Below, piece by piece: positions 16,357 through 64,000 of a stretch of 64,000 bases of DNA. Under the pieces are notes generated by a model. The model was given only the letters and a program-made list of their open reading frames with translations, ran no database searches and was not told where the DNA came from. The position numbers and the translations under genes are program-made. The stretch spans positions 951,745-1,015,744 of the forward strand of contig RHPI01000026.1 in NCBI GenBank assembly GCA_009103225.1, read 5' to 3'. Numbering within the stretch: the first letter of the stretch is position 1; the number at the start of each line of letters is the position of its first letter. This stretch comes from Chlorokybus atmophyticus (taxonomy: Eukaryota; Plantae; Mesostigma and Chlorokybus algae).

Positions 16357-19308
16357 TCACTTGGATGCAGTAGCCAGCTCGCCGTCCAGCTTTTGCGTTA
16401 GCAACTTCTGTGTCAGTTCGGGATCAGCGCGTCCCCCGGACTTTTGCATGATCTGCAACACACACGCTTATGAATCTGAAACTGCACTGCAACAGACGCA
16501 GCATGCAAGACAGGTAAACATACTTGTCCAACAAAGAAGCCTCGTACTTTTGTCCGTCCCGATCGGTACTGTTCCAACTGCAGTACCACATGGTGTTAAG
16601 GTGATGAAAACTCAATACACCCGATACAAGCACGCGCTCACGCAAGCATACATGTGCGTGCATCGAACACTGCCCTGAGCTAAGCCGGCAAGCTTAACAC
16701 TCCAGTAGTCTGCTATAGTCGTGCCCCCCCACCTGCTTTGGGTTGGAGTTGACTACCTCATCAATTATTTTCGCCAAAGCATCAACGTCCGAGATCTGCA
16801 CATGAGACGCGTTGGAGTAAACACAACGAAAGGAGGCAAAGAAGAACTCTGTCATGCATACACAGCAATATCCTCATGTGGCAAGCAAGGCAAAGTCACC
16901 TGTGAAAGGCCTTTGGCCTCGACAAGCTCGGCGGCACTCCCGCCAGTGCGCAGAAGCTCCGGCAGCAACTCTTTGGCGATCTTCCCCGAGATGGTGCCCT
17001 TCTGGATGAGATGTAAAAGTTCAGCCAGAGTCTCTGGTTTAAGAGCGATCTCTGCAATGGACAACTTCTCCTCCTTGAGGAACTTCGTAATGTCGCCCAT
17101 CATCCAATTGGCAACAGCCTTCGGCTCAGCTCCTGCTGAGCATGCGGTGTCGAAGAAAAGCGCATTGGTTGCCTCGTCCGCCAGCAACAGCGCATCCGCA
17201 AGCGGCAAGCCAAGGTCCAGGTACCGCTGCCTCCTCTGCAACAGGTATCGCTGTGATCAGAAACCTCTCTGGCATCAAGCAATCAAGTACACATGCAGGC
17301 AAGCAATCATGTGCACGCCCACAAGCACGGTAACGAAGACAGCATGCACACACACTCAAGCATACATGCAGGCAAGCAATCATGTGCACGCCCACAAGCA
17401 CGGTAACAAAGAAAGCATGCACACACACTCAAGCACACACGCATGCATGCGTGCGCACACAAATGCTCCACGCTCAGAACCTTAAGTTTTGAGGTGCTGT
17501 GACGACGGACTTGCACATGCATGCACGAACAGAGAGTGGATACAACACGACAGCAAAACACAACTTGAAGTGCTGTGGTGATGTAGTCTTTTTTGTAAGT
17601 CAGTGCTCACCTCATCCGGCAGCTCTGGTAGTGTGCTGCGCTCATTTGCCAGTACAGCATCCGTGATGCGCACTTCAGGAAGATCTGGCTCAGGGAAGTA
17701 CCGGTAGTCTGCCAGGCCCTCTCTGTGCAGACATAACTATCAAGTTAATTTGCCAACTTACCATTCCTATCTACCTGTCAAGATGCTTGTTAACGTACTT
17801 CTTTCGCATGGTGATCGTTTTCTGACCGGCTTCATCCCACAGCCTTGTCTCGTTCACAATTTCCTGCCCCCGACCCGCTTCATGCAGCGCTATTTGCCTT
17901 GCAATCTCAAAATCCGCTGCGCGCTGCATGCCTACAAACCATCAGTTAAAACTTGAACCTGCCAACCATCTGTTCAAGGAACACGCGCGCATTGTAAGAA
18001 AGACATTATTAAACTGTAGCTTGAAGCAGCCTGGGTTAGTCAAGTGCATGCAAACATACACGCCAAAGCGCACGCATGCAAACGCATGTGCACCTGAGAA
18101 AGAGTTCATGTTTTTGATCTCCACTTTGGTGCCCAAAGGCGTGCCGGGCCAGTGCACTGAGACATTGACATCGCAGCGCAGGCTGCCCTGACTCATGTCG
18201 CCCGCAGACACACCAAGATACCGCACAATGCGCCGTATCTCAGCACCATACTCGGCCGCTTCAACCCCCGACCGCAAGTCAGGTTCGGACACAATCTCCA
18301 GCAATGCCACGCCGGCGCGATTGTAGTCCGCAAGGCTGTGTGAAGACCCCGACAGCGCGCCCGCAGCTGACCCCTGATGGAGGAGCTTCCCCGCATCCTC
18401 TTCGAGATGGCAACGCACAATGCCCACGACACGTTGCTCACCGCCCACCTCGGCCGGGAGGGTTATGCGAAGCCTCCCCTCGTGGCCGAGCGGGGTGTCG
18501 CTCTGCGTGATTTGGTAGCCCTTGGGCAGGTCCGCGTAAAAGTAGTGCTTGCGGGCGAAGCGCGTGGTGGGGGCGACTGTGCAGCCGAGCGCGAGGCTCA
18601 CGCGTAGGCCCGCGCTCAGCAGCGACGCATTCAGTCTTGGAAGCGAGCCTGGCAAACCCAAGCACGCTGGACACACGTCCCCATTAACTGCTGCTCCGAA
18701 CCCTGCCGCGCACGAGCAGAACGCCTTGCTTACAGTGCTCACCTGCATACAAATCGCATATGCTCTCTGCTACCATAAACACCAGCTTGTGTGCAACTCT
18801 AAATTAAAGTGCAAAGCGCGCATGCGCGCACACTCTGTCACACACTCTGGCTGTACGAGCAGCGCCCACCTGGCTAGCAGCAAGCAAACGCTGCAATGCC
18901 AGGTTATGTGATGATCATCAACACTGCACGCAACAAGTGGCGTTTGGCCATACAGCAACTACTCCACCAAGCATTCAAACGCTAAGGTGTGAGATCCATG
19001 TACAGTCTAAGCATGTAACACGTAACGTGACCCATGCCACTGACCTGCACATGGGTTTCCACTCCAATGACGGCCTCCCACTCTCCAGCAGCAGCTGAAG
19101 CTGCCGCAAGCACTGCCGCATTCCCCCGCCCCTTCTGCAACCACCTCAACGCCGCAGGATTGTGCGCTTTCAGCTGCGCACCCGTGAAGGAGGAGCTGCA
19201 GGCGGTCGATGAAGACGACAACGGCGATGAGGACGGCAAAGGCGCCGCATGCACACGAGACACCCTCAAGCACACCCCCGGCCCAACCGCCGTCGCCGCC
19301 GCCTGCAT
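16357..19308 (-). CDS. gatB: Glu-tRNA(Gln) amidotransferase subunit B, organelle-targeted, 8 exons
   Basis: Transit-like N-terminus, [116 protein letters not shown]|[15 protein letters not shown] introns join in frame. Confidence 0.96.
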
Positions 19309-19632: not shown

Positions 19633-22600
19633 ATGGCGGGGTTTGGGATCCGCACCAGGCGGACGCAGTGGGACATGTCCGGGCTGGACGGTGCTCTTGC
19701 TGCAGCTGCTGCTGGAGGAGGGGGAGGAGCAGGAGCAGGAGCATTAGCAGGAGGAGCAGCAGCAGGTGCAGGAGATGGCAGAGGGGAGGACGGCGCGGCG
19801 GTGGACGACATGGATAGTTTGGAGCCATGGACGCCGACCTCATCGTCCCACCAGAGGCTGGTGATAGTGTCCATGCAGCTGCCGCTGAGGGCGAAACAGG
19901 CGCCTGAGACAGGGCAGTGGGAGTTTGAGTGGGATGAGGACTCACTGGTGGCGCAGATCAAAGATTGCATGGGCCTGGAGAGCCACCTCCGCGTGGTCCA
20001 CGTCGGCACCCTCCCTGTTTATATTGAAGATCCGGCCGAGCAGGACCGCATTTCCGCCCACCTCGCCTCCACCTTCGCCTGCCTACCCCTTTTCTTAGAC
20101 GAGCGCCTCTACGGCAGATTCTATGACGGTGAGTCGTCGTTGTGATTGTTGTGTCTTGATTATTGTCATCGTTGTCATTGCTGATTGCATTGCTTGCAAT
20201 GTGGTCCGCTTTGTCAACTCTAAGATCTGTATAGACTCACATCTTACCTGCAATGACATTGTCAGGCACAAGCGCCATGTCTGTTGAGAGAAGTGCATGC
20301 ATGTTGTGTAAATATGCATCGGCATGAGTTGCTGCGGGCTGTTTCATCAGTGCACTGTATGTACGACACGTTGAGTCTGCTGCCAAACAAGCATGTCAGC
20401 CTGTTAAGGTCAAGGAGACGGAGGTTTGCTTGTTGCATGTCGTTGCATAAGGTAGCTTGTGGTCTTGACTCTGACCTCTGCTTTCAAGTGCAGTGCATGT
20501 GTCAACAGCTTACTTAATTCGTCATGTAATGTTGCAGGCTTTTGTAAGCAGTACATATGGCCCCTTTTCCACTACCTGCTGCCACTGCACCCTGAGCACG
20601 GAGTGCGTTTTGAGCGCAACCATTGGCAAGCTTACGTCGCCGCCAACAAGAAGTTTTCCGACAAAGTCATGGAGATTGTGAACCCCGACAGAGACTACAT
20701 CTGGATACATGATTACCATCTGATGGCGCTGTCCACATTTATACGCAGAAAGTACAACAACGTGCGGCTGGGCTTCTTCCTGCACAGCCCATTTCCATCA
20801 TCAGAGATATACCGTACTTGCGTAGTGCGAGAGGTATGCACATATGTTGCATGGCTGCAAGCTTGCGCTCAATGTTGCATAGCAAGTGTGGTCAGTTGTA
20901 CTAATCGCTTTGTCTGTGGTGTACAGGAGCTTTTGCGTGCTGTTCTCAATTCAGACCTGATTGGCTTTCATACATTTGACTACGCTCGCCACTTCCTCAG
21001 CTGTTGCAGCAGGTGCATGCAAGTATTCATTGGAATTGTTGTTTTTTGCTGCTGTTTCGCTGATGACTTCTGCTTGCAGGATGTTGGGACTAGAGTTCGA
21101 GTCTAAAAGAGGTTACATTGGCTTGGAGTACTACGGGCGCACAGTATCAATAAAGATAATGCCGGTTGGCGTGCGCGTAGATCGTTTGATTGGAGGGTTC
21201 AAGTGGCCAGAATGCCAATGGCGGCTTGGGGAGCTGCGGTCACAGTATGAGGGCAAAACCGTGTTTGTCGGCATGGATGATGTCGACCCCTTCAAAGGGC
21301 TGGCTTTCAAGTTTCAAGCCCTGGAGATCTTCCTCGAGCAACATCCCGAATGGCATGGCCGCTTTGTGCTTGTGCAGGTCTGTTGTTTGCAGCAAGTTGT
21401 ATGTCTTAAGTTTGATGACGCATGTGCGAAGTATATGACATACTGACACCTGCGCGTGACTGGACAAATGCCAGGTTGCAAACTCAGCTCGCGGTAGCGC
21501 AAAGTTTGAGCAGTTGCGTGAAGAACTCCGGCATCAAGTTGCTCATATCAACTCGAGGTGGGTGAGGTGCAGCTCTTGACTTGTTTATTGGAGTCTTCAT
21601 TGGACTTATGGTTGATGTTTCATCTAAATGTAGATTTGGGTATGATGCTGTGGAGTTCTTGGAGCGCCATGTACCGCTACACGAGCGCATTGCACTGTAC
21701 CATATAGCGGAGTGCGCCATCGTAACCGCCGTGCGCGATGGACTCAACCTTGTGCCGTATGAGTACATTGCTTGCCGGCAAGGCTTGACAGACGAGGACG
21801 CGAATGCCCCTCGCTCATCGTCACTCATTGTTTCTGAGTTCATGGGCTGCTCTCCTTCCTTGTCCGGCGCCATTCGAGTCAACCCATGGGATGTCGAGTC
21901 GGTTGCAGATGCAATGTTCACTGCCATTTCTTTACCAGATGCTGAGCGGGAGTTGCGGCACGCAAAGCACTTTGCGTATGTTGCGCGACATACTGTTGGG
22001 TATTGGGCTCAGTCGGTTGTGGCAGATCTGCAACGCGCGTGCAGGCGGCACTCGCTGTTGCGTTGTTACAACCTCGGGCTTGGTCTGGGCTTCCGTGTCG
22101 TGGCGCTGAACCCAAACTTCCGTAAGCTTGAAGCCGGTGATGTGCTGTCGTCGTACGCGCGGTGTCGGAATCGTGCCATCCTGTTGGACTACGACGGCAC
22201 AATGATGGCAAGCAGCAATGCGCACGCGGGTGGGAGCAGCAGCGGGGGCGCGGGTGGCGCATCCCTTGCACACTCGCGCACACCTTCGCCAGATGTCCTC
22301 ACTGTGCTGCAGCAGCTATCTGCTGACCGCCGCAACCATGTGTTCATAGTGTCGGGACGCGACCGCCGCACGCTGCACAACTGGTTCGGGGGTATTGAGA
22401 GACTCGGTCTCGCCGCTGAGCATGGCTTCTTCTACCGTTGGCCTGGTGCTGACATGAAAGCCGCCAGCTGGGACCAGTTGTTGCCCGCCTCGCAACCGTT
22501 CTTGTGGAAAGAGGTGGCTCTCCCCATCATGCAGCAGTACATGGAGTCCACGGACGGGTCGTACATTGAGGAGAAGGAGAGCGCGCTTGTGTGGCATTAC

Positions 22601-23241
22601 GGGGAGGCCGACCCGGCCTTTGGTTCGTGGCAAGCCAAGGAGCTGCTGGACCATCTTGAGTCCGTGCTGTCCTCCACAGAGAATGTGGCCGTGGTGTCCG
22701 GCCAGGGCATCGTCGAGGTGAAGCCCAGCGGCGTGTCCAAGGGCGTCGTTGTGGAGCGCGTGCTCACCGCCATCTCGCAAGGCCCTTCCCATGTCGAGCC
22801 TGATTTTGTGCTGTGCATTGGTGATGATCGCTCCGATGAGGACATGTTCCAACAAGTTGAGACTGTTAATTTCTCCCCGCACCTCCCCGCACAGGTAAGT
22901 AGCTGGTTGCATGCATTTGGCGTTGCATTCCTCAAGTGTTATTGCATGTACACGCGGCGATTCTCCTGATAGCCGCCAGTACAGGTGTTTGCTTGCACTG
23001 TCGGCCAAAAACCCAGCAAAGCGAAGTACTATCTCAACGACACTGTTGAGGTATGTCGTTGTTCCGCAATGGTGATGTGAAGATTAGAAGTCTGAACTCA
23101 GAAGTCTTGTGCTCATGTGCGGGATCTTGTTGCCTTGCACGAACTAACCACTTGGATCTGCAGGTGATGGAGTTATTGCACGCTCTAGCGCAGGTTAGCA
23201 CATCACATCCACAGCACGAGCAGCAACAAATGGAGCAATAG
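19633..23241 (+). CDS. TPS: Class II trehalose-6-phosphate synthase/phosphatase (GT20 + HAD TPP domains)
   Basis: RLVIVSMQLPLRA, FCKQYIWPLFHY, WIHDYHLM, LGFFLHSPFPSSEIYR, DLIGFHTFDYARHFLSCCSR|MLGLEFESKRG, VRDGLNLVPYEY, SEFMGCSPSLSGAIRVNPW, ILLDYDGT, IEEKESALVWHY, VEVKP.GVSKG, CIGDDRSDEDMF, CTVGQKPSKAKYYL. Confidence 0.96.
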
Positions 23242-24770: not shown

Positions 24771-26608
24771 CTACCGCATAAGCAATTTGGGCGCCGCCAG
24801 CGACAAAGCCAGCGCGAGTGTGACCGCCGCATGCCATCTCACAGCAAAATACTTCGCTTTGAACACAACTGAAGGGTCCGCATGGTTGGCCGACACAAAG
24901 CGCAGCATCTTGTTCACGATGGGCAGCGTGAGCGCAAAGAGGGCGAGAGCGGGGACAGGTAGCGCACCTGAAAACATACCCACTACCACCGACGTGTACA
25001 CGCCCCCCGCCGCCCACGGTAACAACCCCGCCGCCCTCTTTGTCCCGAGCCTCACTATCGGCGAGAGCTTCCCCGCAGCCCTGTCATCATCAATCTGATG
25101 AAAGTGGCTGCAGAATAGTATAGCTGTTGTGGTGATGCCCACAATTAGAGAGGCGATAACCGCGCCGGGAGAGATGATGGAGATGATATCTGCAGCTGCG
25201 GCTGCTGGGGTGGATATCGCCCTTAATGTGGCCATATAGAAGGCTAAAGTGGCCATTGGGCCGAAAGAGATGAAGCAGAGTGGCTCACCCAGACCCAAAT
25301 AGCCCAGCCTAAAAGGCGGGGACTGGTAAACGTAACCACAGGCTATTGCACCCGCCAAGAGCGCCATTGAAGTCTGATTGCGAACCTGAATGAAAGATTA
25401 CAAGAGATGAAGGTGTAGTGGTTGATGTCAGGCACATGTGTGTATGTGTCAGGCACGTGCGTCTGCGTGTGCACACATATGCATGCGTGTACGTGTGCCT
25501 GTTCTTGGGCACATGCGTGTGTGCACGTGCACGTGTATGTGTATGCGTGCCCGTGTGCATGTATATGTGTGTATGTGTGCGTGCAGGTGTGCACATGAGT
25601 GCGATCGTAAGAATCCACCTGCATGTACGTGTGCGTCCTTTTGTGCGTTTGTGTGTTCTGACCTGTGAGGCGATGAGGGCGATGCCGGCGGCAAGGGAGG
25701 CAAAAGACGCGGCGAGTGTGCCCCACATGCTACCGGTGATGTTCACAACGCTCTCGCGCTTATTCTCGTCCACGCCAGTCATCGCGTCAAACTGCAAACG
25801 CACATGCACAAGCGTACATCAAGCTTACAGCACCCGCATGCGGGCATCCAAAACTGCATCCAATATGCAGCCAATCAGTGACATGACTGACTGTCACACA
25901 CAATGCCGTATGGTGTGTGACGTGACTCATGTGTCACACAATGCAAACCTCAAAGAGAGGTTGTTGTACATGTTGTCAGCAAGCTGTCGTGACGGGTGAC
26001 GTTGTCCCATGCACAATAAACTTGTACGTCACTGTCATATATGCACATGTAGGTTTGCGGGCAAAGCATTGTGTATTTGTGTGTCACGAGCTGTGTCTCA
26101 CAGCATCGTTGGAGAGGTTGAGCCAGAGGATGACAAGAACAGCCCCGCCGGCGAGCGCTGAGAAGGCTGGCCATGGGAATGGCGTCATGGCCGGTGCCGC
26201 CGCCCACGCCGCCGCCACCCCCGCCGCCACCGGCGCCACCGCCACGCTGTACATGGGAGGCTTGGCGGCGGCCAGCAGCAGGCGGCGCTGCTCAGCTGGG
26301 GAGCACTCCGAGAACTTCGGCGCCCGCCTGACGCCTCCGTCCTCAGCCACGTCCCCAACGACGCTGGTGCTCCCGACGACCAAGCCACTCGGCAGCTGCA
26401 GAGCGTCCCGCCATCGTGGCCGCCGCCGCCGGCGGCCATGCAGACAACTTGCAGGCAGCCATGCGCAATGCCAGCGCAATGCCGCACCGGCGCAGCTCCC
26501 CCGCCGCCTCCCAGGAAGGTTTGCCGCACCCGTCCCAACGCCAACCACCACCCCCTCAGCCCGCGACGCACAAGACGGCGACACCGTCGCCGCCGCCGCC
26601 GCCGCCAT
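24771..26608 (-). CDS. menA: 1,4-dihydroxy-2-naphthoate prenyl(phytyl)transferase, plastid, 3 exons
   Basis: AAKPPMYSVA, LWLNLSNDA|FDAMTGVDENKRESVVN, YVYQSPPFRLGYLGLGEPLCF, ILFCSHFHQIDDDRAAGKLSPIVRLG, KYFAVRWH. Confidence 0.95.
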
Positions 26609-26609
26609 C

Positions 26610-26777
26610 GCCACGTGGCGACAGTGCACTAGTTGGCGCATAGCATTTGGTTCAACTTTCAGATATGGTTCGATCCAGGTTGGGACCTGTCCCGCTTATG
26701 CTTTAGGATCAGTGAAGCCGGTTTGGACAAGTTGGGGTTTGGGGCGGGAAGGGCGAGAGGACAGCGAGCCACGTGGC
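26610..26777. promoter_or_regulatory. Compact divergent intergenic region bracketed by two perfect G-box palindromes (GCCACGTGGC)
   Basis: GCCACGTGGC at 26610-26619 and 26768-26777; the two ATGs are 181 bp apart. Confidence 0.5.
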
Positions 26778-26789
26778 AGTGTCGGGTGC

Positions 26790-28915
26790 ATGACGGGCGG
26801 TGGGGGAGCGCCGGTGGTGGAGCAGGAGGTTGCGGAGAGGAAGGTGGTGCGGGGCGAGGCGGGGGCTGGGGTGGAGAGCTCCACACCACGGTCTATGCGG
26901 GCGAAGAAGCTCCTTGTGCTGGACATCAACGGTCTGCTGCTGCACAGCGAGTTCAAAAACAAATTCCCCGCCGCCACCGCCTCCCCCTCCACCGCCTCCG
27001 CCGTCTCGGTGAATGGCGACGTGGCCGTCGCTGTCCCCTCAGTTGCCGAGCCTGCAGTTAAGCAGCAAAAACTTAGGACGGTGGGGGGCAGGGCGGCGGA
27101 CGCTGTGCTGGGCGCCCACGTGGTGTTCGACCGCCCCTTCCTGCGGGACTTCATCACCTGGGCGCTGAACACCTTCAAGGTGGCCGTGTGGACCTCCGCC
27201 AAGGGCCACAACGCCCGCGCCTACGTGCACCACGTCTTCAGCAAAATTCTGCAGGAGGGGGGAGAGGAGAAGCAGGAGGAGAAGCAGGAGAAGGAGGATG
27301 AGACAGTGGTTGATGAGCGCCTGGCGTTCGTGTGGGACCAGGAGCGCTGCTCTGTGGCAGCAGGAGGCGCTGCCCGACACCCTGACAACCCCTACAAGCC
27401 CCTCTTCCTCAAGGAGCTATCCGCCTGCTGGGCGCTCCCGGAGCTGGGCGGCCTCTACGGACCCCACAACACCCTCCTCGTGGATGACGACGCCTACAAG
27501 GCCGCAGCTAATCCGGTCAGTGCCCCTTCTCAGCTGTCATTTTCTTGGTGTTCCAGTCAGTTTCGCTCAAATTCAACTCAGTACGCACTCAATGCTGTCT
27601 GGCTCGTAATCAGTCCATCAACTATGCAGCTAGTCTCAAGCACACGACATTGTCACCAACATTTGCTGTGTTTTCAGGGTCGCACATGCGCTGACACGTG
27701 ATTGCATGCTCACAAATCACAGTTGTTGGCCCACGCTAGCGGACATTGGTGTTTGCCTGAGTGTTTTTGGTTTCTCTTTTTGCTTACTAAGTACTTTTCT
27801 CTTCTCATTGCAAAACAGCCATACACAGCAATACACCCACCAAGGTACTTAGCCGACGATGCCCACGACAACGCCCTCAGTAAGCTGTTGCAATTATAGT
27901 TTATTTTTGTATCTGGTACGAGTCACGCCATTTGTTATTGTTTGTCAATATCTGATTATTTGAAGTTTGACATATATAGTAGGTCAACATCTTTCTCTGT
28001 TCAGGTCCTTTTGGTGCGATTCGTCTGTATTTGCAAGACTTGGCAGACGCGTCGGACGTGCAGGATTTTGTAAGGACACATCCATTCCACACATACTGCA
28101 GCGGGGCCAGCACGGTCACCCATGTCACGCTTGCGGACCTTCTCGAACGCTCCGCGCGCATCGCGCAAGCCGAAGAAGAGCCGAAGAGGCAGCTACAGCA
28201 GCAGAAGGAACATGCGCGGCAACAATGGGAACTGCAGCTACAACAACAAGCACAACATCATTGGCAAGCACAACAAGCAGCACAACAACAACAACATTGG
28301 CAACAGCAATGGCACCCACCGCAGCACCATAACCACCTTCTTCAACAACAACAGCCTGCAGCAGGCTCACTTGACCTCGACCGCAGTGCCATTGCTGCAT
28401 CAGCACGCTTTCACTTGCAGCAGCAGCACCCACACCCGCACCCGCATTCAAACAGTGCTCAGTGGACAGAACAACCACCACGAGAGACCCGCTGGGACGC
28501 GGCACGAGACCATACTCAACAATACCACACGCATCAAGACGCTAGGTGGGATGCAGGTACATACCAACATGAGGCCTCCTCCCATCCCCAACATGCACGG
28601 CACACCAGATGGGATGATAATGGCTACGAACACAGGTACTCCCGCCCTCATGTCGACATGCAGCAATGGCGTGTCAACAGATGGGAAGAAGTGGGTGATG
28701 AGTACTTGCCTCCACCACAACATCAACGTCTGCAACTTCAACAACCACAGCAAGCACAGTGTGCACCTTATGCACAGGCTTTGCAGTATAGTGGTGGTGG
28801 TAGTCAGCTTGTACATGGCACGCAGCAGCACTATCAGTACCAGCAGCAGCAGCAGCAGCAGCAGCATAACCCCATGCAATATTACGACCCCCGTCAACAT
28901 CGTTGGCGCCGGTAG
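26790..28915 (+). CDS. FCP1/NIF-homology HAD-fold protein with Gln/His-rich C-terminal tail
   Basis: KKLLVLDINGLL, RPFLRDF..F.VAVWTSA, FVWDQERC, KPLFLKEL..W, NTLLVDDDAYKAAANP|..YTAIHPP..DNAL|GPFGAIRLYL..L.DA.DVQDFVR.HPF. Confidence 0.85.
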
Positions 28916-51732: not shown

Positions 51733-54690
<2,958 letters not shown>

Positions 54691-56363: not shown

Positions 56364-57356
56364 GCAAGATTTGAATCGATAACAAGACTCGTGACTTGCG
56401 ATGTGTGTGTGTCGCTACATGACTAATGGATTAGGCGATAATCACGCAGCCTATGTCATGTTGCCAAACAATGTGCGAACAGTCTTATGGCGGTGCTCCT
56501 TAAAAAGGGCATTGACTTTCAGCCCTCATTTGTCGTGAGTGCTTAAAGCTTGTTGCCAACATTGCTTAAACAAGTCATTGGTATCATTACTAGTTTGCTA
56601 TGCTCACCCACAATGACATTGATTAAGCAGCTCCTGCATGGGTATATGATATGCACGATACATTAACGCTTGGTTCAGCGTATGTGCATGCATGTACATA
56701 TGCATGCAACTATGCATCTACAAAACTACCAAGCTCCGAGCAAGTTGAACACCCTGGCAATCAACAACCAATGCCGGCATTTATGACTTACCATGCTACA
56801 TTGCAAGCATGACATATATAGTGATGCTAACTACCACAAAGGCAAGAACTACGCCAGCCATAAAGAAGCACAGATGCACCATACAAAGCTGATGGCAAAC
56901 CATAGCATGAGTGTGCGCGCTTATGCGACACCAATCAACACTGCACACGCTGCAAACCGCCATGCACACGCACACGAGAGTGCTGCAATCAGTGTTGGCG
57001 TGAAGGGAACAAAAAGGTGAGAAGCTAAGCTACTTGAGCCCGCTTGATTCAGCTGGTCCTGTCAGGCAAACTGCTGCAGATAACTCACCGTACACGCAGC
57101 AAAGTTCACAGGGTTACAAGCTGTTGCCTGTGTATGAATCGCGAGGCCCTGCATGCGTGCGTATGCAAGCTTTACACTGCTTGCAAGTTTGTGAGGTAAG
57201 AAATGACATTGTTTGTCACTTGGCTGTTGTTTCTGTGTGAGTGTCACTAGCAAATGCAATTATTAGATGACACCGCGTGTTGGTGTGTGGACTTTATATT
57301 GATGTCACCAAGTTTGGATCTCCAAAGACGGAAAACCAACCCCCAGCCATGGGGGG

Positions 57357-57410
57357 AGAGCGCGAGCGAGCGAGCGAGCGAGAGAGCGAGAGAGAGAGAG
57401 AGCGAGAGAG

Positions 57411-57458
<48 letters not shown>

Positions 57459-57459
57459 N

Positions 57460-57495
<36 letters not shown>
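57357..57495. repeat. Compound (GAGC)n/(GA)n microsatellite
   Basis: Direct. Confidence 0.97.
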
Positions 57496-58999: not shown

Positions 59000-60185
59000 C
59001 TCACCGTCATGGCGGGCAGCTGCAGCCTGCCAGAATGTGCGGCAAGAGTGTTAGGCGAGAGGTCAGATACATGATACGTGTGTGGTCACAGTATGGCTGT
59101 GTAGTGGGCAACTAGAAGCAGCAGCTAACTCTTCTCGTTCTGTCTCCCCTCACACATTGCTTGCCAGCGCCTGATCTACGAGTCCGCCCTCCTCGATCAA
59201 TCCCCCGCTCTGCACCGCCTCCGCGGCCGCAAGACGCACCGCAGCATCCTGACATAGTAGCACCAGTCATGCTGTGTGGTGTCTTGACTTTGAATTGAGT
59301 TTAGAGACACACTGCATGCATGCATGCTTTGCGTGTGTGTTGCCATTTTCATGGGCACCCCGCCGAGGTACTCGGGCGGACCCGCTGCGTTCTCCATAGG
59401 GTATCTACACACGCAAACGCACATATGTTGGCAACCACACGTTGGCAAATACGAAGGTGTGGAACAAGTAACTGTGCACAAGCCATCATGATTACTCACT
59501 GAGGGATGCGGGCGGGGAAGTCACCTCGCGCATGGAGGTCGGCGGCGGACTGTGCACACGAGGAAGAATGGAGGCAAGTTCTCAGATATAAACACAACAA
59601 CAAGTGTGTTGTTGAGGCGCATGCAAAGAAGCGAACTCCTGTGCACAAGTGCGTCCAAGTACGCTGGAACAACTCATGATTGTGTACACGTGCAGGTGCA
59701 GCAGCCTGCAAGTATGCACTGTACCGCCAGACACAATTGCGTTTAAGAGTGTTATCATCATCACATTCACATTCCCACCCACCTGCGCCTTTGCCGCGAA
59801 TCCCCCCGCCCGTCTGATGCGCCTTAGCAGACTCGATCCACGCTGCCCCGGCCTGAACACAGAGGGCGCGGGTGTGTGCGCATGAGTGTTAGGCATAGAC
59901 ATGCATGCAACGAGCAAAACGTGTGCGCGAGTGCATGTTTTGAGTCAGTCCATTTGAGCATGCAGTCTGTGCTCGCACTCGCGCTCGCGCACAAGGGACA
60001 GCATCGTGCTAGCTGGTGGCATGCCAAACGTTAGAAGCTGCAAGTACTAAGAGTAGAAAGGCTCGCATACTCGGTACCATCATGGTACCGCCCGGAAAAC
60101 GCACCTTGGTCATGCCATTGGGCACTCCGGTAGGCAGGTACTCCGGCGGGCGCAGGTCGGGATTGAAGTTGACCTTGGAAGACAT
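59000..60185 (-). CDS. Hypothetical small multi-exon protein with two internal PPEYL-GVP repeats; 3' end unresolved
   Basis: Manual splice model: MSSKVNFNPDLRPPEYLPTGVPNGMTK|AGAAWIESAKAHQTGGGIRGKGA|VRRRPPCA|RYPMENAAGPPEYLGGVPMKM|DAAVRLAAAEAVQSGGLIEEGG. Early junctions are canonical; later ones would need GC donors. Confidence 0.45.
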
Positions 60186-61103
60186 CTTGGCTGCTTGTGT
60201 ACTCGCGCTCTCGCTCTCATCGCTCTTGAACCTCAAAGCAACAACAACAGCGAACAAAAGAAAAATATAGGAGGACAAGAAGAAAGAAGCCTCCTTGTTT
60301 TGGTTTGGCTAGCCCACCCCTGGTGTGCAGAAGGCACTTGAGCTCACTTGCTCACTCACTCACTCACTCACTCATTTCTTCGCTTATGGGGACGCTATGC
60401 TATGCTGGGCTGGGCTGGGCTGGGTTGCAATGGTGCGATGAAAGGGATGTAACAAAGCGTCAGTGATGTACGAGACTGAGTGCTGGGCTGAGCTGCTACA
60501 CCCCAAACAGGTGCCGATCACGATGCTTCTGTCAACGACATGCACAGTACTGCTGAGGTCAGCACACGCGCATATAGGGACGTCAGCAGTGCAACAGGAG
60601 ACGTTGTGATGCACACACAACCCGTAGACGTGCACAAACCCCGTACACTTACACAGTTGCCACAAGTCATCAACGTGCATGCACTTGCTGGGAAACGGAG
60701 ATGCAGGCAACTGTTACCTCCTCCTGCGCATGCATGCAAGGAGACGGCGGGTACTTATCTACAATCAGTGCGCTGAAATCAACCTCCCAAAACAACCTTC
60801 CCTCGAGGCATTGATGTGCCTTTTCACGCATCCATGCGACTGTGTGTGATGTGTGCATCGTGCACACAAACTACATACCCGCTGCACATGCCAGATGCTT
60901 CGTGCTGTCGTAGTCACAAGCAGAAGTGGATTGGTTGGACACACAGAGTTCGGAGTACAATGCTTAACGGAAGAGTCTGAGCCCTTTTTGTTACTACCTA
61001 CTACTTGTCCCTCTAAAGTCCACAAGGCCAAGACAGCTGCGACACGTTTGTGTACCTTCCAGCACACGGCAGCCATTGTGCTGGGGATGCTTCAGCAAAG
61101 CTC

Positions 61104-61559
61104 TCACACCGCAGTGGGGCACCAGACGAACGCAACGCCCACGGTGAGAGGCGCGGACCACAGGTTGTCGTTGGACCAGGTGCATATGGCAGTGCCTTCA
61201 TAGATCGTAGCTTCAAGCAGAGCAACGCCCGGTGGTGCCATGTTATTTTTGCGGCATAGGACCTGCACGGACCTTCCGGAGCTCTGGTCGTCGGGCTGGA
61301 CCTCAATGACGTTAGCTGTGCTTCCGCTGAAGCTATAGGCAGCCTCGAAGTAGTAGCTGGAACATCCATCTGCCACCAGTGACGGAGGCAGTGCAATACA
61401 CGGTCCGGTGGTGCTTGCTGAGCATGAAGAGGCGCGGACCCTGGAATAGACGTTCTTCAACATGTTCACTGGCCTGCAGGTTTTCGTGGTGGTAGCATGA
61501 ACACCCGCAAGTCCTGTTGTCAGCATGATGACTGCTGCCAGAAGCAGCGCCGTCTTCAT
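61104..61559 (-). CDS. Secreted Cys-rich protein, 151 aa, unknown family (paralog 1)
   Basis: Intact intronless ORF with signal peptide MKTALLLAAVIMLTTGLAGVHA and 7 Cys; conserved with paralog 2. Confidence 0.85.
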   Translation of the reverse strand: MKTALLLAAVIMLTTGLAGVHATTTKTCRPVNMLKNVYSRVRASSCSASTTGPCIALPPSLVADGCSSYYFEAAYSFSGSTANVIEVQPDDQSSGRSVQVLCRKNNMAPPGVALLEATIYEGTAICTWSNDNLWSAPLTVGVAFVWCPTAV

Positions 61560-62930
61560 CGCGTTCTGCATCAAGAGCAGAAATCCACAAGTGAGCAAGT
61601 CGGTTTTCTCTATGCAAACCGAAGGCCAAGCAGTTGCTGATGTCCACATACTTACAAAACGTATGCCAGAACGTATGTCATCCATCACAGTGGCAGTGTG
61701 CAAGGCAAGACTTACAGGTGCTAGAGGGAGCCTGATGCGTAGAGGACGCAGATCACCAGGTTGTCAACGGCAGTGTCTTGAAGCTCGCTGTGTGCATTGC
61801 CAGGAAACCTTCCCCTTTTTGTACGCGACTGAGACTGAGGCCTTTTCGTCTGTCCGTCTCGACGGCTGCCGCGGCAGCACTGAGGGCATGGCGGCGCCTT
61901 GCTCAGCTCTGGGCATGATGGCCCGCCTGCAAGGAGTGGATGGCGCGCGCTGTGACGCGGCACGAGGCCTATTGCGGCTGCTGCGTCATCTTCCTCAGCC
62001 CAAGGCAAGCCCGCCGGCCGCCAGGTGAGTAAGCTGCTGTCAGCAGGGAAAATGTAGTAGTACCTTATCCTAACTGCTGTGTGTTGTGTTGTTCTGCTCA
62101 GACGCTCTCGGAGGAGTTGAAGTTGACGTGACGTGTTGTGCTGTCAACTGGTTGCATGCGACGAGAGCGGTACTGAGTCTTGATAGTGCGGCTAGGCGTG
62201 ACTGGTGCTGACGCGGATCTTTTGGCAGCACGTGGTGGTAGCCTATACCCTACACCGTGTTTGGCGCGGTAACAACAAGGCGACCGTATTGATGCGTCGC
62301 GGAGTCGCTTTGTGTGGACGAACTCGACGCCTTATCTTATCGGGCTGTGATACACAGCCTATAGGATATACGTACTATTATACTATTATATTTCCCCTGC
62401 TGACAGCTCAACTACCTGGCTACCAGCTGAGTAAGATGCCGGCGGCAGCATCACGTCATGCCGCAATAGCCACAACTTTTGATTTTTGAACCACGGCACA
62501 GCGCGCGCCATCCACTCTTGGCAGGCGGGCTATCTTGCACAGAGCTGAGCAAGGCGCCGCTTATCTGCGCCATGCCCTCTGTGCTGCGTTGTCAGGCCGC
62601 GGCAACCGGCCAAAAAGACAGTCAGTCTCAGTCGAGTATAGAAAGGGGAAGGTCCTCCTGGTAACGCATACTGCGAGCTTCAAGACACTGCCGTTGACAA
62701 CCTTGTGGTCTGCGTCCGCCACTCACCAGGCTCCCTCTAGCACCGGTAAGTCTCGCCTTGCACACTGTCATTGTGGTAGATCACATGCTGGCATGCGTCT
62801 TGACAGTACGCGTCTTGACATTGATGAGTTATCAATGTCAAGACGCGTACTGTCAGCTGCTTGGCCTTCGGTTTGCACGGGGAATACCGACTTGCTCACG
62901 TGTGGATATCTGCTCTTGATGCAGATGGCG

Positions 62931-63386
62931 ATGAAGACGGCGCTGCTCCTGGCAGCAGTCATCATGCTGACAACAGGACTTGCGGGTGTTCATGCCACCA
63001 CCACGAAAACCTGCAGGCCAGTGAACACGTTGAAGGACGTCTTTCGCGAAGTCAACGCCTCTCCATGCACCTCAGGCGACAATGGCGTGTGTATTCCAGT
63101 GCCTCAGTCACTGGCGGCAGAAGGATGTTCCAGCTACTACTTCCAGGGTGCCTATAGCTTGGACGGAAGCGCAGCCAACGTCTTTTATGTCAGCCCTAAC
63201 GATCAGAGCTCCGGAAAGGCCGTGCAGGTCCTATGCCGCAAGAATAGCTTGGCACCACCGGGCGTTGCTCTGGTTGAAACTCAGATCTCAAACGGCGCTG
63301 CCGGATGCACCTGGTCCAACGACAACCTGTGGTCCGCGCCTCTCACCGTGGGCGTTGCGTTCGTCTGGTGCCCCAATGCGGTGTGA
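62931..63386 (+). CDS. Secreted Cys-rich protein, 151 aa, unknown family (paralog 2)
   Basis: Same length, signal peptide and 7 Cys as paralog 1. Preceded by a 5'UTR intron (gtaagt near 62745 to tgatgcag near 62924); an alternative ATG lies at 62925. Confidence 0.85.
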   Translation: MKTALLLAAVIMLTTGLAGVHATTTKTCRPVNTLKDVFREVNASPCTSGDNGVCIPVPQSLAAEGCSSYYFQGAYSLDGSAANVFYVSPNDQSSGKAVQVLCRKNSLAPPGVALVETQISNGAAGCTWSNDNLWSAPLTVGVAFVWCPNAV

Positions 63387-64000
63387 GAGCATTGCTGAAG
63401 CATTCCCAGCACTATGGGGGCTGCCGTGTGCTGGGTGCCGGTACACAAACATGTCATGTGCAGTCGTCTTGTCCTCTTGTGGACTTTGAGAGGGACAAGT
63501 GGTATAGTGATAATGGCTCAGCCTCTAGAGGAATGAGAGTCCACTAATTGTGAGTGGCATGGCACTAGCTCGAGCTCTGCACAACAAAGAATAGTTCTAT
63601 GACTCTTCTGTTCAAGCATTACTCCATACTCTGTGCGTGTCCAACCAATCCACTTTTGCTTGTGACTGCGGCAGCACGAAGCATCTGGCACGTGCAGCGG
63701 GTATGTAGCTAGTGTGCACGATGCACACAAATCACACACAGTCACATGGATGCGACAAAGGCACGTCAATGCTTGCTTTCCTTGAGGGAAGGTTGTTTTG
63801 GGAGGTTTATTTCTGCCAAGCGCACTGATTGTAGATGGATACCCGTCGTCTTCTTGCATGCATGCGCAATAGGTAACTGCCTGCATCTCCGTTTTCCAGC
63901 AAGTGTACGTTGATAACTTGCGGCAACTGCGTAAATGTACAGGGTTTGTGTACGTCTACGGGTTGTGCGTGCATCATAAAGTCTCCTTTTGCACTGCTGA

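Follow-up and report, generated by a model that had tools for sequence, protein, structure and literature searches.

Two small genes, here called A and B, lie head to head within an inverted duplication in the genome of the alga Chlorokybus atmophyticus (GenBank assembly GCA_009103225.1). They belong to a stretch of 64,000 nucleotides (contig RHPI01000026.1, positions 951,745 to 1,015,744 of the forward strand), which is referred to throughout as the window and in which all coordinates below are counted. Gene A is read on the minus strand and occupies 61104-61559 including its stop codon, or 61107-61559 without it. Gene B is read on the plus strand and occupies 62931-63386 with the stop, or 62931-63383 without. 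Each is an uninterrupted open reading frame (ORF) of 151 codons followed by a stop. An earlier, sequence-only reading of this DNA had drawn attention to the pair, and had proposed that gene conversion keeps the ends of the two genes alike while their centres diversify, as in recognition systems.

The proteins encoded by A and B are 74% identical, and the genes are separated by 62 nucleotide differences, 39 amino-acid differences and no insertions or deletions (indels). The replacements are very unevenly placed. Residues 33-125, the variable centre, hold 38 of the 39, which amounts to about 40% of the centre; the corresponding codons lie at 61185-61463 (minus strand) in gene A and at 63027-63305 (plus strand) in gene B. 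Residues 1-32 are identical in both proteins, and only nucleotides 18 and 66 of the coding sequence (CDS) differ there, both of them synonymously. The last 26 codons carry a single nucleotide difference, at position 446, which exchanges threonine for asparagine (T149N). Seven cysteines, at residues 28, 46, 54, 66, 102, 126 and 147, are present in both. Every count given by the sequence-only reading for codons, identical N-termini, the one-nucleotide difference at the C-terminus, central replacements, indels and cysteines was reproduced. The N-terminus, read by eye, consists of MK, a hydrophobic stretch, and VHA before TTTK, and points to a signal peptide MKTALLLAAVIMLTTGLAGVHA (residues 1-22) that would be cleaved before TTTK, leaving a mature chain of 129 amino acids with the seven cysteines. 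Seven being an odd number, one of them would be free or joined to another molecule.

The duplication itself was confirmed by alignment of its arms, which lie at 60583-61960 and 62491-64000 and are at least 1.4 kb each. On the left, the 3' flank of gene A (60583-61103) is the inverted homologue of that of gene B (63387-64000); the two are about 88-91% identical and several indels apart. The 5' flank of gene A (61560-61960) mirrors that of gene B (62491-62930) at about 84-88% identity, including a 33-nt indel. Between the two 5' flanks lies a spacer of about 530 nt (61961-62490), mostly unique and mirrored only in a patch of about 27 nt (62036-62062 versus 62381-62407); it is presumed to contain a divergent promoter region. 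The homology of the right arm continues to the window end and is still aligned at its last base, 64000, so that this arm runs out of the window. The left start of 60580 proposed earlier simply reflects where the window stops, mirrored onto the other arm, and marks no real boundary. Outside the last comparable base of the left arm, 60583, stand a (CTCA)8 microsatellite (60343-60374) and short repeats of GCCCA type (60390-60440), and these repeats could mark the duplication boundary.

Across the non-coding arms, 111 of 860 aligned positions are mismatched (12.9%) and 19 indel events have accumulated. Their differences comprise 85 transitions and 50 transversions, against 30 transitions and 32 transversions between the coding sequences of A and B, so that transversions are enriched in the CDS. 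An assembly artefact, or collapsed haplotypes, was considered and rejected, with arms 13% different and 19 indels apart and with the published Chlorokybus genome reported as homozygous. It is unlikely that the two genes were placed head to head as a device.

Measured against the arms, the coding sequences are protected in two ways. The coding ends hold three mismatches in 177 nt, compared with 12.9% in the non-coding arms (P=8e-8), and the 456-nt CDS has no indel where 8.2 would be expected from the 19 events in the arms (P=0.0003). The scarcity of mismatches at the ends and the intact frames show that both ORFs are under selection, and that A and B are real genes.

Constraint along the genes is heterogeneous. 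Substitutions were counted by the Nei-Gojobori method, separately for the centre (codons 33-125) and for the ends. The centre has 9.3 silent differences over 67.5 silent sites (Sd/S) and 49.7 replacement differences over 211.5 replacement sites (Nd/N), giving a dS of 0.153, a dN of 0.282 and an omega (dN/dS) of 1.84 (Fisher p=0.051); the same counts at the ends are 2/46 and 1/128. The NG86, LWL85 and maximum-likelihood routines of Biopython put omega at 1.8-2.2 in the centre and at 1.4-1.8 over the gene as a whole, and across methods the dS of the centre ranges from 0.135 to 0.158. A pairwise codon model of Goldman-Yang type, fitted by maximum likelihood, gives the centre an omega of 2.3-2.4 (likelihood-ratio test, LRT, 5.3-5.6, p=0.018-0.021) and the whole gene an omega of 1.8-1.9 (p=0.055-0.074). 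The point estimates of omega are above 1, and a dN/dS well below 1 was not seen in the centre.

The comparison with the non-coding arms places this excess. At silent sites the centre has diverged as far as the arms have (dS about 0.14-0.15 against 12.9%), whereas over all nucleotides its divergence is 21%, versus 13% in the arms. Replacement divergence in the centre (pN 0.235) stands against 0.129 in the arms (p=1.4e-4), in a test that is more powerful but leans on assumptions. The centre is in this sense distinct, as the sequence-only reading had held, since replacement changes outrun silent ones there.

A third member of the family was found, and it is the sole annotated relative of A and B. 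It is the Chlorokybus protein Chrsp6S07462 (JGI Chlat1 7453; EukProt EP00898_P007169), designated P0001 below, which is collinear over all 151 residues without large gaps, at 76% identity to B and 71% to A. It shares the seven cysteines and the signal peptide, and the relationship to A and B extends into its 5' flank. The annotated start of P0001 lies 35 codons further upstream, at a position that is TTG and not ATG in A and falls in another frame in B. This longer N-terminus corresponds to sequence upstream of A and B that is not conserved, and therefore the methionine of MKT is taken as the shared start. Gene B has one N-X-S sequon, NAS at mature residue 20, which A and P0001 lack.

Like A and B, P0001 varies mainly in the centre, but it differs at the ends too, at 9 of about 59 positions. 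When the three proteins are compared site by site, P0001 is the odd one out at eight end positions, and neither A nor B at any. The central pattern is another: 17 sites set A apart (16 within residues 33-97), 6 set B apart and 7 P0001, and at a further 15, which include nearly every variable position in 106-123, all three differ. The centre of B has 28 differences to P0001 versus 38 to A. The simplest reading of these patterns is that copy A would have changed fastest after the duplication.

No wider family could be attached to these three proteins. P0001 was the only relative of A and B in a word search of 5.8 billion proteins, and the only one accepted in a HMMER profile search of 1.84 billion representatives, which was run without a length filter so that fusions and longer kin were covered. 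Three further candidates from the profile search were rejected: P0002 and P0004, with seven FG-GAP_2 blades, and P0003, with other repeat-type domains, match residues 54-97 only, through summed repeats. Homology over the whole FG-GAP domain (PF14312) was not found, the hhalign probability being 18%. Pfam searches of A, B and P0001 with hmmscan, at E up to 10, returned no family and only a chance match to PUA (E=0.12). A sequence profile search of the PDB gave no relative, and neither the whole protein nor its mature part, compared with named clusters of the ESM Atlas, produced a usable match. Searching the whole window by tblastn with A, B and P0001 revealed no further copies, and literature searches turned up no paper on the family. 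A repertoire of many variants was not found, as the window and the sets of 5.8 and 1.84 billion proteins held only A, B and P0001. The family that the sequence-only reading could not recognise is in fact an orphan with P0001 as its only relative and with no match to Pfam or to PDB sequences. As far as such searches reach, A, B and P0001 appear to be an undescribed, genus-restricted orphan family, to which A and B add two unannotated genes.

The fold of the proteins was predicted with AlphaFold2 in two runs, one on full-length B and one on mature A, each with an alignment of the three sequences. Both runs gave the same all-beta topology of seven strands with one short helix, at moderate confidence (pLDDT 70.6 and 74.8, pTM 0.63 and 0.70). 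The structure comparison suggested by the sequence-only reading was carried out with Foldseek and VIA-align, and yielded the same weak list in the same order for both models. It includes the C-terminal module of PCSK9 (7anq; Z 6.6-6.7), the foot of an R-type pyocin fibre (6cxb; Z 5.7-6.1, Foldseek E 4e-3 to 1e-2), the lysozyme inhibitor PliG (4dzg; Z 5.1-5.7) and the H-type lectins SLL-2 (3wmp), HPA of Helix pomatia (2ccv) and 2w94 (Z 4.5-5.7, 5-8% identity, below background and with no Pfam match). C-terminal domains of phage tailspikes were also among the weak matches. Overall, the matches have a TM of 0.32-0.47 and a sequence identity of 5-11%. We claim from these models a small beta-sandwich of lectin or receptor-binding type and nothing narrower, and the predicted sandwich convincingly matches no solved family.

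A relation to the MD-2-related lipid-recognition (ML) domain (NPC2, Der p 2; PF02221), suggested by the signal peptide, a beta-sandwich of about 130 amino acids and an 'EVNxSPC'-like motif, was not supported. For A, B and P0001 no match to this domain was found by hmmscan at E up to 10, and chains of NPC2, Der p 2, MD-2 and GM2AP were absent from the top 50 Foldseek and VIA-align rows for either model, the models being only moderately confident.

Along the predicted secondary structure, the strands at 67-76, 96-104 and 137-147 scarcely vary. Variation falls on the 46-64 loop, strand 3, the 112-130 hairpin and strand 1, where mostly alternating positions (36, 38, 39, 40 and 42) are affected. 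This distribution fits a conserved core with a variable exposed surface.

The explanation towards which we lean overall, and which we hold to be probable if not strongly so, is a young inverted duplicate pair of a secreted protein, with a conserved scaffold and a centre diverging under selection. An inverted segmental duplication in Chlorokybus produced two intact, single-exon genes in divergent orientation. Since that event, neutral divergence has reached about 0.13-0.15 per site, in the arms as well as at silent positions in the centre. Purifying selection has continued to act on the signal peptide and the last beta-strand, and residues 33-125 have taken replacements at about twice the pace of silent and non-coding sites, with copy A apparently accounting for most of them. 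No cysteine has been lost, the reading frame is intact, and the strands at 67-76, 96-104 and 137-147 are preserved. The paralogues would be diverging in the specificity of an exposed binding surface to which the 46-64 loop, the 112-130 hairpin and strands 1 and 3 contribute. The protein itself may be an extracellular, disulfide-stabilised ligand-binding protein of lectin-like or inhibitor-like character, and the most plausible site of its action would be the mucilage or cell wall, in interaction with microbes or matrix polymers. For the selective part of this account, the reading to which we commit ourselves is diversifying or directional selection after the duplication, probably acting mainly on copy A.

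Several observations weigh against this explanation. The boundaries of the centre were picked post hoc, which makes the p-values for the centre optimistic and positive selection borderline, and the LRT for the whole gene stays at p=0.055-0.074. The 38 central amino-acid differences fit a random placement of 59 nucleotide differences (36.5 +/- 3.0), so the signal is an excess of total change over the neutral rate and not an extreme ratio of replacement to silent change. The arms may be constrained themselves, and this would inflate the test of pN against them. An exact-sequence look-up with nine start variants found neither A nor B among publicly recorded proteins. At 17 central sites B sides with P0001 and A stands apart, yet the flanks and the ends group A with B, and strong acceleration on A, or an exchange with a third copy, is therefore required. 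Finally, every fold match falls below the background of the tool (Z < 8, where a typical best Z without a clear match is 7-8), for which reason we can only infer a binding function.

An alternative is a relaxation of constraint with no adaptive diversification, in which one redundant copy, probably A, drifts at an omega of about 1 on a tolerant surface while the core stays constrained, and in which A is perhaps heading for loss. For this alternative speak the whole-gene test, which does not reject an omega of 1, the number of amino-acid differences expected from random placement, the larger number of unique changes in A (17 versus 6 for B) and the missing entries for both genes in public protein sets. 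Pure drift, however, cannot outrun the neutral rate, and the total divergence of the centre (21%) exceeds that of the arms (13%). Additionally, the point estimates of omega are 1.8-2.4 by every method, and neither copy has suffered a stop, a frameshift or the loss of a cysteine. We regard relaxed constraint as somewhat unlikely, though with a real share of the probability.

The gene conversion proposed by the sequence-only reading requires a closer look at the ends. In that account, short-tract conversion between the inverted arms fixes the coding ends while the centre is driven apart, and the locus would work as a hypervariable, recognition-type set of cassettes, with crossovers able to exchange one cassette for another or to turn the promoter spacer around. 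The claim that the ends are more alike than the arms even at synonymous sites holds numerically, with 2 of 46 silent sites different (4.3%) versus 12.9% in the arms, but as statistics it is a trend only (P=0.053; P=0.10 versus the silent sites of the centre). At the C-terminal end none of 19 silent sites differs (P=0.07). For conversion, this silent-site deficit is a hint only. In favour of the same account, the ends are able to change, since P0001 differs from A and B at 9 of its end positions where A and B differ from each other at 1 of 58, and the three-way patterns of ends and centre disagree.

The flanks tell against it. Between A and B, the last 56 nt ahead of the ATG hold 8 mismatches and the first 33 nt behind the stop codon hold 3. 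Going outwards from the genes, mismatch density is back at the level of the arms within 5 nt of the ATG and within 7 nt of the stop. A conversion tract would ignore coding boundaries; divergence that reaches the start and stop codons at arm level therefore indicates selection on the protein and not a conversion tract. Likewise, the dS of the centre is no higher than the divergence of the arms, which means that no older segment sits between rejuvenated ends here, and arms that are 13% diverged with 19 indel events are those of a repeat that is not undergoing general homogenisation. Silent and flanking identity does not rise clearly above that of the surrounding duplicated DNA in a tract crossing the coding limits; the identity is bounded by the ATG and the stop. 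Furthermore, at 96 and 81 nt the two near-identical blocks offer recombination little length to work on. The known members of the family number three, which do not make the repertoire of a recognition system as inferred earlier. Sexual reproduction is not known in Chlorokybus (PMC7027972, PMC8611356), and this speaks against a cassette system of the recognition type and renders the earlier suggestion of a mating or pheromone role unlikely. Purifying selection on the ends together with diversifying selection on the centre would explain the pattern, and conversion appears unnecessary. Neither conversion nor a flipping of the promoter or a swapping of cassettes finds support here, and we consider the account built on them unlikely.

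A cassette exchange with a third paralogue, in which B received its centre by conversion from a P0001-like copy elsewhere (or P0001 its own from a B-like one), would account for the 17 central sites at which B and P0001 agree against A (16 within 33-97), for the only 7 at which A and B agree against P0001, and for the 8 end sites at which P0001 alone stands apart, but it is very improbable, because the silent divergence between the centres of A and B (0.14-0.15) is no higher than in the flanks, where a centre of B from an older lineage should exceed it, and because residues 106-123 differ among all three proteins.

The case for a young duplicate under diversifying selection seems to us credible but modest, and it is not that of a demonstrated recognition or cassette system.

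The remainder of the window offers several features of its own. Long ORFs or exons of ordinary nuclear genes were seen for GatB (PF02934) at 17945-18748 on the minus strand and for a trehalose-phosphate synthase/phosphatase (PF00982 and PF02358) at 21581-22966 on the plus strand. An ORF of 590 amino acids at 25929-27698 (plus strand) has a partial NIF-type phosphatase domain and no relative in the word search. Two ORF pieces at 51733-52657 (minus strand) are what we take to be the C-terminal part of methionine aminopeptidase 2; the piece of 130 amino acids is without a Pfam match. A (GA)n microsatellite of about 70 copies occupies 57356-57495 and contains one ambiguous base, which appears as X in the ORF translation. 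Adjoining the left arm, at 60012-60278 on the minus strand, is an ORF of 89 codons with MSSKVNFNPDLRPPEYLPTGVPNGMTKVRFPGG followed by a hydrophobic stretch and with no Pfam match, which may be an exon of a small membrane protein.

Chlorokybus is an early-branching streptophyte soil alga, subaerial and embedded in mucilage, of the lineage most distant from land plants. What the locus shows so far is evolution of a common sort, in which a recently duplicated gene keeps its scaffold and changes at its surface; the unusual element is the organism. If diversifying selection holds, A and B would be among the very few candidates for fast-evolving extracellular binding proteins in Chlorokybus, and would offer a concrete handle on its biotic or matrix interactions. 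In the manner of recognition and effector proteins, A, B and P0001 conserve their signal peptide and cysteine scaffold and vary on the surface of the mature protein. A bolder reading makes the three the visible part of a Chlorokybus-specific family for extracellular recognition or defence, built on an unassigned beta-sandwich whose exposed strands and loops are diversified and whose blocks are shuffled by short exchanges, at the ends between A and B and in the centre between B and a P0001-like copy. We think this quite improbable; if true, the streptophyte lineage that branched off first would possess an algal counterpart to variable ligands of the cassette type.

Two groups of known proteins invite comparison. 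The lectin-like and receptor-binding sandwiches met in the structure search (6cxb, 3wmp, 2ccv, 7anq and 4dzg) are of similar size and share an all-beta sandwich topology with the predicted models, a likeness without support at the level of sequence. The other group consists of the conotoxin superfamilies, plant SCR/SP11 and the defensin-like genes, which are secreted proteins with a cysteine framework, a conserved signal peptide and a fast-evolving mature region. Unlike in these families, the mature protein of A and B is a predicted beta-sandwich of 129 amino acids and not a short knotted peptide, the 26 C-terminal residues are as conserved as the signal peptide, and A, B and P0001 are three members only, with no relation to those families in sequence or fold. 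The likeness is one of evolutionary pattern: as in the conotoxins, SCR/SP11 and defensin-like genes, A and B join a conserved signal peptide and a fixed cysteine framework to local duplication, and their replacements are concentrated in the mature part, with point estimates of omega above 1.

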